A stretch of 34,395 nt of DNA from positions 1 through 34,395 of the forward strand of contig CAXIUT010000201.1 in assembly GCA_964035545.1 (NCBI GenBank), written 5' to 3'. Below are positions 169 through 34,395 of the stretch, piece after piece. The position numbers and the translations under genes are program-made. Below the pieces are notes generated by a model that was not told the origin of the DNA, did no database searches, and worked only from the letters and a program-made list of their open reading frames with translations. The stretch's first letter is position 1. The number at the start of each line of letters is the position of its first letter. This DNA comes from Bugula neritina (lineage: Eukaryota > Animalia > Bryozoa).

Positions 169-621
169 TCATTAGTAAATCCATTTATGGCTATGTTGAT
201 TCCAATCAATAAGTTAGCTTTGAAACCAGATATTGATCTATCTTTTGGCGTTTCCAACGCTATCAGATGCATGACATACATTTCTAGAAAGGAGGACTGC
301 GTTGTCTCCTCTGATGGTCTGGGGATTGGAGAGGTGAGGATCTGTGATGCCTAGAAGTCTTCTTCCGGCTGCTACTACACCTTGCCCTTGCCATACCATG
401 CATACAACTGGTCCAGAGGAGACGTAGTGATCGACTAAAGCTGGAAAGAAGGGTTGTTAGTGAAGGTATCCGTAGTGTTGAGAGATGAGTTCTTGAGTTG
501 GTATTGTCATTTTCATATTTTTGAGCTGATATCCTTTTTATTCAAATCGAGATATGATGTTTCCTATTTTATTTCTTTGAACTCCTTCAGGCTTAACCAT
601 AACGTATGTTTGTTCATCCAT
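169..621 (-). CDS. NDK: Nucleoside diphosphate kinase
   Basis: With TAR=Glu: [15 protein letters not shown]...[11 protein letters not shown]...TIRGD...[21 protein letters not shown]...WIYE, ending in TGA. 150 aa, no introns, catalytic His present. Confidence 0.96.
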
Positions 622-697: not shown

Positions 698-1298
698 TCA
701 TTTTTTTGCTTGATAAGTTGGGTATCCTTTCATTATGTTTTCGAGATGTTTATCAACAAAACTATATAATCTTGAAAGATAATCTTCATAATAGATAACT
801 TTAGCTTCTGAGTCTTTGTTTGTAGAAAACTAAACGAAATCTTTTGTTTATTTCTATCCGAATTCAATACCTGATGTCTAGAGGTGACGTTTCATTTACT
901 CGATTTCTATGTATCCTTTTCCTTCTGGGTCTAATAATCTGAAAGCAGCTAGTACTGTTTCTGGATCATCAGGTTAAAATTCTTGTTATTTGAGAACTTT
1001 GTAACAATGGGAATACCTCTAAGCATGTATGGTTCGAATTTGGAATATTTGATTGATTCTAGAGGTTCATCTTCTTAGATCTAGGTTATAAGATGGCTAC
1101 TTCTGGGAGAATGGCGTCTCTGACTTGTGCTTCTGAGGGGAACTGTCCGAGATATCTCATGACATAGGGGACTTCTTTTTTTTCTATGTAGTTTTTCTTT
1201 TTATCGTAGAAGAGAGTGAATCCTTAACTGATTTTAGTTTTAAGGTATTCTTCTCTTTTAGCCTTTTAGGTCATAGACAGGTTGTTATCCCACAGCAT
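698..1298 (-). CDS. EFCAB2: EF-hand protein, EFCAB2/DRC8-like (dynein regulatory complex)
   Basis: Reads EVPYVMRYLGQFPSEAQVRDAILPEIEEDEP...AAFRLLDPEGKGYI...IYYEDY after removing two 20-nt introns (997-1016, 1081-1100). 187 codons. Confidence 0.8.
997..1016 (-). other. 20-nt spliceosomal intron
   Basis: GTATTCCCATTGTTACAAAG; removal restores the reading frame. Confidence 0.85.
1081..1100 (-). other. 20-nt spliceosomal intron
   Basis: GTAGCCATCTTATAACCTAG; removal restores the reading frame. Confidence 0.85.
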
Positions 1299-1489
1299 TA
1301 GTTATATTTTTAATATAGAAAATGGAACTATTCAATTCAATTTATACTCTATTCCTACAACCTTATACAAAATGGTATTATTCTCATAAAAGTAGTTCTA
1401 GATATTTAAAACTAGCCATTCTATTCTTGTTTTATCAATATATTAATCTTTATTATTTATCTATTTTATGTTGAGTTGATATAATATTA

Positions 1490-2317
1490 ATGGGCGCAGG
1501 TCAGATCATCTAAAATAACATTAAGTCAACCACAACTAGTATCTGGAATCAAGTGCCTCAGCTATAACCTAAAACTTGGTTGGACTTCGATCTCAAAAAC
1601 TACAATAAAGCCTTCGTTAATTTAGCCATAACAGTTGGTGTTCTTACTCTGGCTAAATCTGCTATTTCTGTAAGTTGTTCTACCCTTTGTGCTTTGAAGA
1701 GTAAAAAAGTTCCATCAAGTAAACAATTCCATGAGAAATATGGTTATCATAGTTGGGCTTTGGTGGCTGATTGCAAAGGCAATGAAGATTATTGTAGATT
1801 TTTGGCATTAAATGGGTTTAATTTGATATTGTTAGGAGAGGAGTTGGATATTCAAATTGCTAAGGATAAAGTGTAGCAATATGGAGTTTAGGTGTTGACT
1901 GAGGTGGTAAATTGGAAATAAAAAGAACAAGACATCCATTTCTATGAAAACTTATTATAAAATTTAAAGAACTTTGATATAGCATTTCTGATTTTACCTA
2001 AACTAACCAAGCCGTCTGAATTAACACCAACTCATCTTGAAAACATCCAGCCGTTTGAACACAACTATCTTTTGGTTCGTTATTTCGGTCCTAAATTAAA
2101 ATTTCGTAGCTACAAAAGTGGAATAATATTTCCAAGTTACCCCCAAAGCGAATAGATATCTAAACATAATGGAATAAGTAAATGTCTAATAGCTGGCAAT
2201 GATGCATTCGGCAGAATATGCAGTTATTAATTCAAACAGCAGTTGTAAGTGGTAGTGGCTAGAGGTTCTGTTTAAAATGCTTTTGTTGCTTTGGGAAATT
2301 AAAGAGTATCCTATTGA
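1490..2317 (+). CDS. Divergent short-chain dehydrogenase, 3-ketoacyl-CoA reductase (HSD17B12/KCR)-like, probably inactive
   Basis: 275-aa open frame. Hydrophobic N-terminal segment, then KYGYHSWALVAD...FLALNGFNLILLG, resembling the KCR stretch KYG-WAVVTG...LAKRGLNVVL. No TGxxxGxG motif and no clear YxxxK. Confidence 0.6.
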
Positions 2318-2345: not shown

Positions 2346-3186
2346 ATGATGTTGTTTAGAGGGATAAATAGAAGTAGGCATTGTTTTGGAATGGGAAAGA
2401 AATGGCTCGATAATTTGGCTAAAAGAAACATCAAGGCTGCCAAAATGAGAGAGGAAATGGTTAGTTAGTAGTAAAGATAGAATACCAAAAAGATGTAAGA
2501 TAATTTAAGTGTAGGAATAGAAGCAGGTAATTCAGGCATACAAGGTAGACCAAGTATGGAATCTACTAGTGAGATAGGATCCTCAGCATAACTTTCAGAA
2601 AGACATAATAATCCATCGTAAACAATTTTAGCAATCAACAAAATAACTTCGTTCTGCTATCCTTTTCTAAGACCTGCTTAAAACATAACTAGACATCTTA
2701 ATATACGACACAAAAGGAAAACCATACGCCCACACCTTGCTCAAATATCTATATATACTACTAACTATTTCAGCATCTCTATGGTCAATTTATGCTCTTC
2801 GAAAATACGACCCAAAAAACGGAATATTACTCGATCGCACAACATAAGGCAAAATATTTAAATATATGGTGTATATTTTATCATTTGGGTTGTTTGTGGT
2901 AACTTTGAGTCGGTATAGCAGTTTTCGTCGTAAGTATGTTTAAAAGGTGGTGTATAATACTGAGAGAGAGGAGTTTACATTTACTAAGAGGAGTTGGAGA
3001 GGCAAGAAGTATAGTTTTGGGATAAGTCGGTTTAAAATATTGTATACTGAGAATAAATTTTTGAATGCTCAGGGGATCAACTATTTTGATATTGATAGTA
3101 AAGAGGAACTTAGTATCGTTTATAGAGATTCTTGGATCAAACAAGATCTGTTTAGTCATCTCATCTCTCAAAGAATCAAACTATGA
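2346..3186 (+). CDS. Hypothetical membrane protein, likely mitochondrial
   Basis: Arg-rich N-terminus (MMLFRGINRSRHCF), two hydrophobic segments, ends TGA at 3184-3186. Needs an intron near 2495-2514 plus a 1-nt correction, or an alternative 22-nt intron at 2527-2548. Confidence 0.5.
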
Positions 3187-3253
3187 TTTATATTGTCAAA
3201 ATAGTTAAAGGTCTTATTATTATTTTATTTCTTATGATCATTTTATTTTTAAA

Positions 3254-3861
3254 TCATTTTTTAAGGACAGGGTCTTTTTATTTATGGAGATGGTCTTTTT
3301 AAAATGATTCAATGGCAGCAATTGCTAATCTATTAGGAATGAAGGGTCCTTCTCTTTTCATAGGCTTTTTGTCGATTGGGCAGTTGGCTTTTAGATCTAC
3401 GTGTCTTTAAATACAGAGATGACAGAAGGTGTGTCCGCAGAGGAGGATGGTTGGTTCAGTAAATCTTTAAAGACAGATAGGACAGATAAAGATATCTGGG
3501 TATTGCTTAGAGTCGAAATGTTATTTTTTGACAATCGAGGGTAAATCTTTCCATTTATTTAATGTTTTTTATGCTTTTACGGCATGAAAGACAAAGAATT
3601 GTCCATTATTATCTCCACATGCCTAACATATTTCAACTACATGATATCCTATTTTTTTATAACAACCTTTACATCCAATATCAATTATTTGACAATTGCA
3701 AAGATCAAATGCTTTTACTTTACTGATCTATACCATATTTTAGGTTCTAAAATCTGTAGAAAAATAGTAACACTAGGATCAGGACATAGATATATAGCAC
3801 TTCCTCTATCTGTAACCGATTATCGACAATAACTACAGAACAAAGTAAATACTTCTTGCAT
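3254..3861 (-). CDS. FAM72-domain + RING finger fusion protein
   Basis: N-terminal part: LFCSYC...RG...IFSTD...CNCQIIDIGCKGCYKKIGYHVVEICEACGDNNGQFFVFH (FAM72 pattern). C-terminal part: CPICLERFTEPTILLCGHTFCHLC...CPID (RING-HC). One base is missing in the T-run at 3760-3764. Confidence 0.8.
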
Positions 3862-3908
3862 AATAAAATATAATAATCCTTTTAATTTATAAAGATATAA
3901 TAACAGCA

Positions 3909-4999
3909 TCATTTGATAAACGGATATGTGACTTTTATTTTACAATCTCCTTGAATAGCAAAAAACAGATGATAATTTTTATCACCAACATTGATTACTG
4001 CATTATTGTTCTTATTTATCATTCTTAAATTATTTTTCTTCATAAAAATATCCAAACAAGAACTCACCTGCAAATTGCCTATATGATTGTATTGAACTCC
4101 TTTGCTCTTGCCTGCAGAATCGATGTAGTAGCAGTTGAGGGCCTCTTTGAAGATTTTATCTGATTTCTCGTAGTCGGTTTTTCTGATAAGACCTACTGTT
4201 AGTTTGCTGTTAGCTGGAAAACTGGTTAGTGTTATGCGCATTTTACCTGCCCAGTTGCTGACGTCAGCGCTGAGTAGACACATGTTGGGAGCATTGACAT
4301 TTTTATCTTTTTGTGTGAAAATATCGAATTATTTATTGATATTTTTGGGAATTAGATATTAATCTTTTGATATTTCTACTGTTTTTTATGGTTTAATTTC
4401 TGGAGGAATGATTTTATCGATGTGTATGAAGTTTTGTCGGGCGATGGTGATTTCTTCATTGACTTTTTTGAAGATGTTAGAGAAGATGTCATCGTCGGTT
4501 AGTATTTTAATTTACTATTTGAAGAGGTAGTTTTTGACTTGGAAGTGTGGGTCACCGTAGTTATCTTTGATCATGCTGAGATAAAATTATGAAAATTTGT
4601 TCTTTCTGCTTTACTAAATATACTAATAAATACGTTTTAGTGGATATGGTGTTTGACTTTTTAGTAGGTGAGGAGAATATCTTCTTACAATTTTATAAAT
4701 TCTTATGCGATGTTTTATACACATTTTTTGAGGTGATGGAGGAGTAGTAGTTTTCTTTTTTAAAGTTAGTCTATATTTTGTTCTTGGTGTTCTTTGTTTT
4801 TGTATTTTTTGTATAAAGAATCAAGGTATATTTTAATGGGTTGGTAGTTGTGGCTTTTATGTCTGTCTATGCATAAAGAACAAATCAATGAATTTTAATG
4901 GCACTAAGGGTTCAAACAGATCAGGTTTACTTTCTAACCTGTGTGTCCCTTTTGCTCACAACTTATGTACTTTATCTTGTAACTGGGAATCTACTACAT
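3909..4999 (-). CDS. B-box-like zinc finger + coiled coil + SPRY-like domain protein
   Basis: CEQKGH...ICLNPEC...ICSLCIDRHKSH, a helical middle region and a beta-rich C-terminus (KLTVGLI...YHLFFAIQG). One 20-nt intron at 4614-4633; 357 codons. Confidence 0.65.
4614..4633 (-). other. 20-nt spliceosomal intron
   Basis: GTATTTATTAGTATATTTAG; removal restores the reading frame. Confidence 0.8.
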
Positions 5000-34160: not shown

Positions 34161-34326
34161 TAATGGTGTTTTATTATTGTTGATAAAGGAAGATAAAATT
34201 ATTATCCATTTTGTGGCTACCAGGTAATAAATATTTTTTTCTTGTTTTTCTGGTTTAAAATAATAAGTTATTGATTTATGAACTTAAGTAAATAATAATA
34301 TCATGGTATTTGTTGATTATGCTACT

Positions 34327-34395
34327 GGGGTTGGGGTTGGGGTTGGGGTTGGGGTTGGGGTTGGGGTTGGGGTTGGGGTTGGGGTTGGGGTTGGG
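34327..34395. repeat. Right telomere, (TTGGGG)n
   Basis: Perfect G4T2 repeats to the end of the window, ending TTGGG. Confidence 0.98.

Follow-up and report, generated by a model that had tools for sequence, protein, structure and literature searches.

FAM72A is a stand-alone adaptor that brings the uracil-DNA glycosylase UNG2 to the CTLH-MKLN1 ubiquitin ligase, and its role as a CTLH-muskelin adaptor that reads an acetylated N-terminus was shown only in 2024-2026 (PMC11364545, PMC13676621, bioRxiv 10.64898/2026.09.19.752822). A first-pass annotation of the stretch of DNA analysed here, which gave this vertebrate background correctly, described a FAM72-type domain fused to a RING finger as a candidate E3 ligase in a single chain. 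This raises the question of whether the locus is a genuine gene in which the substrate adaptor carries its own RING and, if so, what such a protein would recognise and whether it would depend on the CTLH-muskelin machine. The window refers to the whole stretch of DNA that was analysed (34,395 bases).

Source chromosome and gene

We found that the window carries C4A2 repeats at one end (1-105) and G4T2 repeats at the other (34310-34395), which makes it an entire ciliate chromosome, 34.4 kb from telomere to telomere. The assembly that holds it comprises 216 Mb in 321 contigs. Parts of the stretch also occur, at 98-100% identity, in three other runs (X3, X5, and X6), which comprise two other organism labels and a marine plankton metagenome, so that the ciliate also occurs outside the sequenced host sample. 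By the left telomere, in the most G+C-rich part of the window, a stop-free piece at 241-456 (minus strand) looks by eye like a nucleoside diphosphate kinase (R-G-D...R-N-x-x-H-x-S-D-S).

The FAM72-RING gene lies on the minus strand, from an ATG at 3861-3859 to a TGA at 3256-3254, at the coordinates and on the strand first annotated, and this TGA is the sole stop in frame. The window was compared over positions 3000-4200 with contigs from two publicly available runs (X1, depth 95; X2, depth 13), and the read-supported frame was obtained by applying the differences of the run contigs to the window by script. In the run contigs the coding sequence is 609 bases long (i.e., 202 codons and TGA) and contains 14 in-frame TAA or TAG codons that are read as Glu. 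As a reference set we used 161 distinct FAM72 proteins among the matches listed (best 120 of 797) in two profile searches of a 5.8-billion-protein collection, for which FAM72 loci from metagenome contigs served as stop-free seeds. Among these listed members, one in-frame TAG column holds Glu in 158 of 161, a second has Glu as its commonest residue, and a third is Gln-rich. No paralogue of either half of the gene was found in the 216-Mb assembly. FAM72-RING is a single-copy gene of a peritrich-code ciliate (TAA and TAG = Glu) and a passenger in a marine invertebrate assembly; the ciliate origin suggested by the first-pass annotation agrees with the telomere repeats at both ends and with the in-frame TAG on a near-invariant Glu column. 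The gene and its starts are as follows.

3254-3861, minus strand: FAM72-RING coding sequence; as assembled, 31 codons in the ATG frame, a 1-base break, then 170 codons and TGA
3859-3861, minus strand: conservative start ATG; the TGA of the preceding gene on this strand lies 47 nt before it
3907-3912, minus strand: two in-frame upstream ATGs, a possible alternative start, overlapping the stop codon of the neighbouring gene
3766-3769, minus strand: frame break of a single base inside the FAM72 part, which offsets the ATG frame from the RING frame

With a start at the upstream ATGs the protein would gain 17 hydrophobic residues, one of them a Phe that precedes the first Cys by exactly 10 residues, as the conserved family Phe (human F8) does. 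This extension is open in the window and in the X1 and X2 alleles, and its residues differ among the alleles. The neighbouring same-strand gene (3909-4560, minus strand) ends in a TGA at 3911-3909, and no stop codon interrupts its last 139 residues. For these 139 residues there was no Pfam match at E 0.01 and no meaningful PDB match, an exact look-up of the frame returned no match, and by eye the end of the protein is SPRY-like. We considered whether the upstream gene might be joined to FAM72-RING by a slip at its stop, and rejected this since there is no slippery site and no evidence for it.

A complete FAM72 domain and a C3HC3D RING

Two domains and the segments that flank the RING were placed on the read-supported frame. 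The full-length joined reading was compared in local scripts only, and the Pfam matches given below come from a six-frame search.

3539-3855, minus strand: FAM72/YPEH2ZP (Yippee-like beta-tent) domain, residues 3-108, from PF14976, a local profile, and BLASTP
3826-3837, minus strand: first CxxC, tent-tip zinc site, C9 and C12 (human C18 and C21), from residue mapping
3662-3700, minus strand: zinc-knuckle C-x-C, C55 and C57 (human C65 and C67), and second CxxC, C64 and C67 (human C74 and C77)
3584-3646, minus strand: pocket core, Y73-H-V (human Y83, H84, and V85), with C79 and C82 (human C89 and C92)
3485-3538, minus strand: linker of approximately 18 residues, no Met and no TGA, between the end of FAM72 homology and the RING
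3371-3484, minus strand: RING finger of C3HC3D type (PF13923), ligands C127, C130, C142, H144, C147, C150, C161, and D164
3257-3370, minus strand: 38-residue C-terminal tail that ends in Lys-Lys, not Arg, and is predicted to contain an amphipathic stretch (F-I-P-N-R-L-A-I-A-A-I)

PF14976 (YPEH2ZP, formerly FAM72) has one match in the assembly, at 3563-3787 (minus strand), with 45.1 bits (E 1.6e-9) against a gathering cut-off of 27 bits. The profile match on which the first-pass annotation had made its reading depend was thus found. As the sole PF14976 match in the 216-Mb assembly is the ciliate gene, the host seems to be without FAM72, or its gene was missed exon by exon. When four pieces were run on Pfam, one stop-free piece of 34 residues matched PF14976 on its own at a sub-threshold 24.5 bits (E 3e-5). 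Against a local profile of 120 FAM72 proteins, residues 3-99 scored 66.8 bits as assembled and 69.7 bits in the read-supported allele, and by BLASTP the ciliate domain aligned to all 161 listed family members with 29-44% identity.

All eight zinc Cys are retained, in agreement with the full Cys-rich domain first described. The tent-tip residues C9, C12, C64, and C67 are Cys in every member of the 161 that covers them, and the family-specific zinc knuckle is complete (C55, C57, C79, and C82). The pocket residues Y83 and N97-N98-G99, which are invariant in the family, are retained as Y73, N85, N86, and G87; the pocket core also includes F89 and an F-H pair, with a two-residue deletion at family S95-C96. 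FAM72 homology extends to a W..LP motif at about residue 108, and the linker is therefore approximately 18 residues long and not approximately 30 as first annotated.

The RING, also as first described, has Asp as its last ligand (CPID). Its match to PF13923 (zf-C3HC4_2; 3374-3484, minus strand) reaches 36.8 bits (E 1e-6; cut-off 27), and the eight ligands are spaced C-x2-C-x11-C-x-H-x2-C-x2-C-x10-C-x2-D. A Lys directly follows the last ligand, and a basic residue at this position is what we take to be the E2-activating 'linchpin'. The CPxD...F-x-P-x-N stretch at and after the end of the RING presumably resembles the linker helix of TRAF6 and RNF41. The conserved Ile and Pro of C3HC3D RINGs are both present, as I129 in CPIC and P162 in CPID. 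This type is defined by Asp at ligand 8, its structural representative is TRAF6 bound to its E2, and its Ile (N-loop) and Pro (C-loop) are invariant among the fly members surveyed and placed at the E2 interface (PMC3166285).

The junction between the domains is in frame, as had been noted from the letters: the two domains share one frame, with no TGA between them and no Met from residue 44 to the RING. It is extremely improbable that FAM72 and the RING belong to two neighbouring genes that were mistaken for one. This reading is favoured only by the general risk of long TGA-only frames in AT-rich DNA, and it is opposed by this uninterrupted junction and by the short distance, approximately 18 residues, between the last FAM72 homology and the first Cys of the RING.

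Proposed RING activity and muskelin docking

We propose that the protein of approximately 202 residues is a self-contained RING ubiquitin ligase with a FAM72 substrate reader that acts independently of CTLH-muskelin, a reading to which we assign a probability of roughly 0.6. In this proposal the FAM72 beta-tent, which keeps both zinc sites and the acetyl-Met tunnel, would serve as the substrate reader, and its pocket would read a protein terminus whose first residue is most likely acetylated Met, with other requirements at the two positions that follow. A charged E2 would be brought in by the C3HC3D RING, which stands where canonical FAM72 has the acidic tail and terminal Arg that it plugs into muskelin. 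E3 activity, terminus reading, and independence from CTLH are what we infer from the sequence. Of the self-contained E3 put forward in the first-pass annotation, one part holds, namely that a genuine FAM72 domain and a genuine RING are fused in a single frame, and E3 activity is the most economical reading of this fusion.

The docking surface of FAM72 argues for independence from CTLH-muskelin. In human FAM72A, L75, K76, and N79 contact the muskelin discoidin domain (bioRxiv 10.64898/2026.09.19.752822), and the C-terminal Arg inserts into the muskelin Kelch channel (PMC13676621). At the positions of L75 and N79, the ciliate protein has Lys in both cases (K65 and K69, within 3662-3700), while of the 161 listed family members 143 have L and 152 have N; the K76 position is variable among them. 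Compared with human and mouse FAM72A, the ciliate protein has no acidic tail and no C-terminal Arg, and it ends in Lys-Lys after a C-terminal RING that stands in place of the canonical tail. A C-terminal Arg is present in 131 of the 161 listed FAM72 proteins, mostly as Cys-Arg, which suggests that docking to muskelin through this residue is ancient in opisthokonts. With a RING in the place of the muskelin-docking tail and the muskelin contacts lost, the protein probably bypasses CTLH-muskelin.

An alternative is that the RING is not a catalytic engine at all and instead serves dimerisation, docking to another ligase, or self-ubiquitylation that controls a FAM72 adaptor working with a separate E3. 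Human FAM72A is itself unstable, regulated by CTLH, and active as a dimer according to the cryo-EM papers, and many RINGs dimerise via flanking helices, for which the predicted amphipathic stretch in the tail would be a candidate. However, all eight ligands are in place together with the conserved Ile and Pro at the E2 interface (PMC3166285), and the known muskelin docking elements are lost. In the assembly, Muskelin_N (PF06588) and CTLH (PF10607) matches fall only on large host chromosomes (C1, C2, and C4) and none was seen on ciliate contigs, with the ciliate part probably incomplete; the host animal thus has muskelin and CTLH-domain genes. The basic residue after the last ligand, which we assume to be the linchpin, also argues for an active RING. 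We consider a non-catalytic RING unlikely, and self-contained ligase activity remains our preferred reading.

The putative degron pocket and UNG

We next consider what the pocket might read. Two 2026 cryo-EM studies established that human FAM72A has a beta-tent (Yippee/CULT) fold (PMC13676621, bioRxiv 10.64898/2026.09.19.752822), with a tent-tip zinc site formed by C18, C21, C74, and C77 and a family-specific knuckle that includes C65 and C67 (bioRxiv 10.64898/2026.09.19.752822). In the cryo-EM structures, acetyl-Met1 of UNG2 occupies a tunnel formed by Y83, L34, L35, L69, V85, P88, L93, F101, and N97. Residue 2 occupies a cavity of A32, L42, M103, S44, and N98, and Gly3 is clamped by F8 and the C96 loop. 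Ciliate residues were mapped to these positions via a lancelet FAM72A-like protein of 149 residues, whose numbering runs three residues ahead of the human numbering across the domain.

In this comparison the acetyl-Met1 tunnel is retained or conservatively replaced at the equivalents of the zinc knuckle, Y83, L34, I/L69, V85, F101, and N97; further tunnel residues are altered (L35 to C, P88 to I, and L93 to G). Equivalents of S44, N98, and G99 are retained. The readers of substrate positions 2 and 3 are near-invariant in the family, and in the ciliate protein they are changed or deleted (A32 to I, L42 to C, M103 to V, and S95-C96 deleted). The L42 equivalent is Tyr in the window allele, and the F8 equivalent is absent unless the upstream ATG is used. 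Since these position-2/3 readers differ from the family, the degron is probably not AcM-[ILV]-G and the target need not be UNG.

This bears directly on the suggestion in the first-pass annotation that the fusion is a ligase directed at UNG, regulating uracil repair or DNA processing in a ciliate. The suggestion draws on the human and mouse FAM72A proteins, which target UNG2, on the retained acetyl-Met tunnel, and on the presence of one UNG gene in the ciliate. The assembly has a single UDG match, on a small contig (C236, 60340-63780) with an in-frame TAA, and we therefore assign this gene to the ciliate. Within C236:60340-63780 it occupies about 1232-2058 (plus strand), in frame 1 up to about 1528 and with the catalytic core in frame 0, which opens at 1327; the frame change could reflect a short intron or a further indel in the assembly. 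The ciliate UNG appears to start with MEAV, approximately 12 residues before the catalytic core, which leaves almost no N-terminal extension. With this inferred start, it would have neither an N-terminal region like that of UNG2 nor the M-[ILV]-G degron. Taken with the absent or uncertain F8 and the altered position-2/3 readers, this speaks against the uracil-repair link, and we regard UNG as a distinctly unlikely target of the ciliate protein.

Integrity of the reading frame

As assembled, the coding sequence is interrupted by the single-base break at 3766-3769, the sole break in the gene, which lies inside the FAM72 part as first reported. In the X1 and X2 contigs an additional base stands behind 3768, accompanied by the substitutions 3765 T>C and 3767 G>C; these changes restore the frame and create the TAG where 158 of the 161 listed family members have Glu. 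Between 3765 and 3884 (120 bases) the window differs from the run contigs by 8 substitutions and 3 one-base indels, compared with a difference of about 0.3% elsewhere in 3000-4200; outside this segment the coding sequences match completely or almost completely. Three of these substitutions turn CAA, GAA, and TCG of the window into TAA, TAA, and TAG of the read alleles. Elsewhere X1 and X2 differ from each other (i.e., they are two intact alleles), with every zinc ligand in place. Because the contigs of two runs carry the extra base and an uninterrupted frame of 202 codons, we read the break as an assembly (local consensus) error or a defective strain allele, and in neither case as an argument against the gene. 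An intron at the break was rejected, since it would remove a conserved FSTD motif, and ribosomal frameshifting was rejected since the read contigs simply carry the extra base.

An alternative is that, in the assembled strain at least, we are dealing with a pseudogene in decay and the domain match is a relic. The frameshift in the window also destroys the codon for the near-invariant Glu, the 8 substitutions and 3 indels are concentrated in one short segment, and no run that carries the gene is recorded as RNA, the library kind of the runs not being on record. However, two different alleles are intact over all 202 codons, and the remaining coding sequence is identical or almost identical; the anomaly is confined to one stretch and resembles a consensus error. 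A pseudogene is therefore highly unlikely, and we treat FAM72-RING as an intact gene.

Relatives and domain architecture

We then asked whether the FAM72+RING design exists elsewhere, a survey that the first-pass annotation had recommended and that was carried out here on the 161 listed proteins. JGI metagenome contigs contained 27 loci that matched a degenerate DNA pattern of the FAM72 core, all canonical stand-alone genes with four-residue spacing, and the intronless ones mostly end in Cys-Arg. The same pattern had no match in viral or prokaryotic genome collections. No RING was found in the 161 listed proteins (best 120 of 797, a listing in which weak ciliate-type matches would not appear) by a regular-expression scan for the RING pattern. 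In agreement, the precomputed Pfam annotation of the listed proteins gives PF14976 alone, with one probable gene merger. An orthologue with the FAM72+RING design was not found among the matches listed, in searches whose coverage did not extend to ciliate proteomes.

The listed FAM72 proteins come from early-diverging fungi, animals, and a few protist transcriptomes. Among the matches listed, canonical FAM72 is common in chytrids, Neocallimastix, Mucoromycota, Glomeromycota, and non-bilaterian animals. In a quick family tree the ciliate domain sits on by far the longest branch, and it is therefore not a recent transfer. Other searches used shorter or indirect queries: two stop-free pieces of at most 35 residues had no match in a PDB sequence search, a 34-residue core piece retrieved from representative proteins only a junk repeat protein via summed repeats, and the antisense stop-free frame, used as a proxy for relatives at the DNA level, had no match. 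A search of the ESM Atlas yielded only FAM72, Yippee, cereblon, and MsrB clusters. Among the papers searched, none mentions FAM72 together with ciliates.

Discussion

Our data indicate that a ciliate carries a FAM72 domain and a RING finger in one reading frame that is intact in two read sets, and that the residues which define both domains are conserved. Compared with human and mouse FAM72A, the protein shares the beta-tent domain, both zinc sites, Tyr83, Asn97/Asn98, and most of the acetyl-Met1 tunnel residues, whereas it differs in the position-2/3 readers, in the two-residue deletion before NNG, and in its C-terminal RING. Cereblon (LON + CULT) and YPEL5 likewise use a beta-tent pocket for a ligand or degron that feeds a ubiquitin ligase (CRL4 and CTLH-WDR26, respectively), but they reach their RING through separate adaptor or scaffold subunits, whereas the ciliate RING lies in the same chain.

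Terminus readers and RINGs are joined in one polypeptide in other ligases, such as the single-chain N-recognin UBR1 (UBR box + RING) and the Ac/N-degron ligases Doa10/MARCH6 and Not4. The UBR box, Doa10, and Not4 are not known to have a beta-tent and use an unrelated reader fold, and these proteins are far larger than the ciliate fusion. With regard to the RING itself, the ciliate protein shares with C3HC3D RINGs of the TRAF6 type the eight-ligand pattern, Asp at ligand 8, and the conserved Ile and Pro (PMC3166285), whereas it has no TRAF zinc fingers, coiled coil, or TRAF-C, and its RING is C-terminal with 38 residues after it.

The first-pass annotation regarded the fusion as a Rosetta-stone link. 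It fits the known link between FAM72 and a ubiquitin ligase, rather than predicting a new one. A retained acetyl-Met tunnel, lost muskelin docking, and a RING of its own provide independent evolutionary support that the FAM72 pocket is a ligase substrate receptor. More tentatively, the protein could be a natural single-polypeptide ligase for acetylated N-termini, with the FAM72 pocket wired to its own RING; we consider this specific reading possible. From the ciliate protein one would expect that substrate positions 2 and 3 are read with another specificity.

The ciliate protein extends the FAM72 family beyond fungi and animals, the home of nearly all members retrieved among the matches listed. 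At approximately 200 residues in one chain it is a far simpler object than the megadalton complex that canonical FAM72 serves. If the reading as a single-polypeptide ligase for acetylated N-termini is true, the role of FAM72 as a ligase receptor would be older than, and separable from, the CTLH-muskelin machine, and the ciliate fusion would offer a minimal 200-residue system in which the degron pocket may be studied or re-used.
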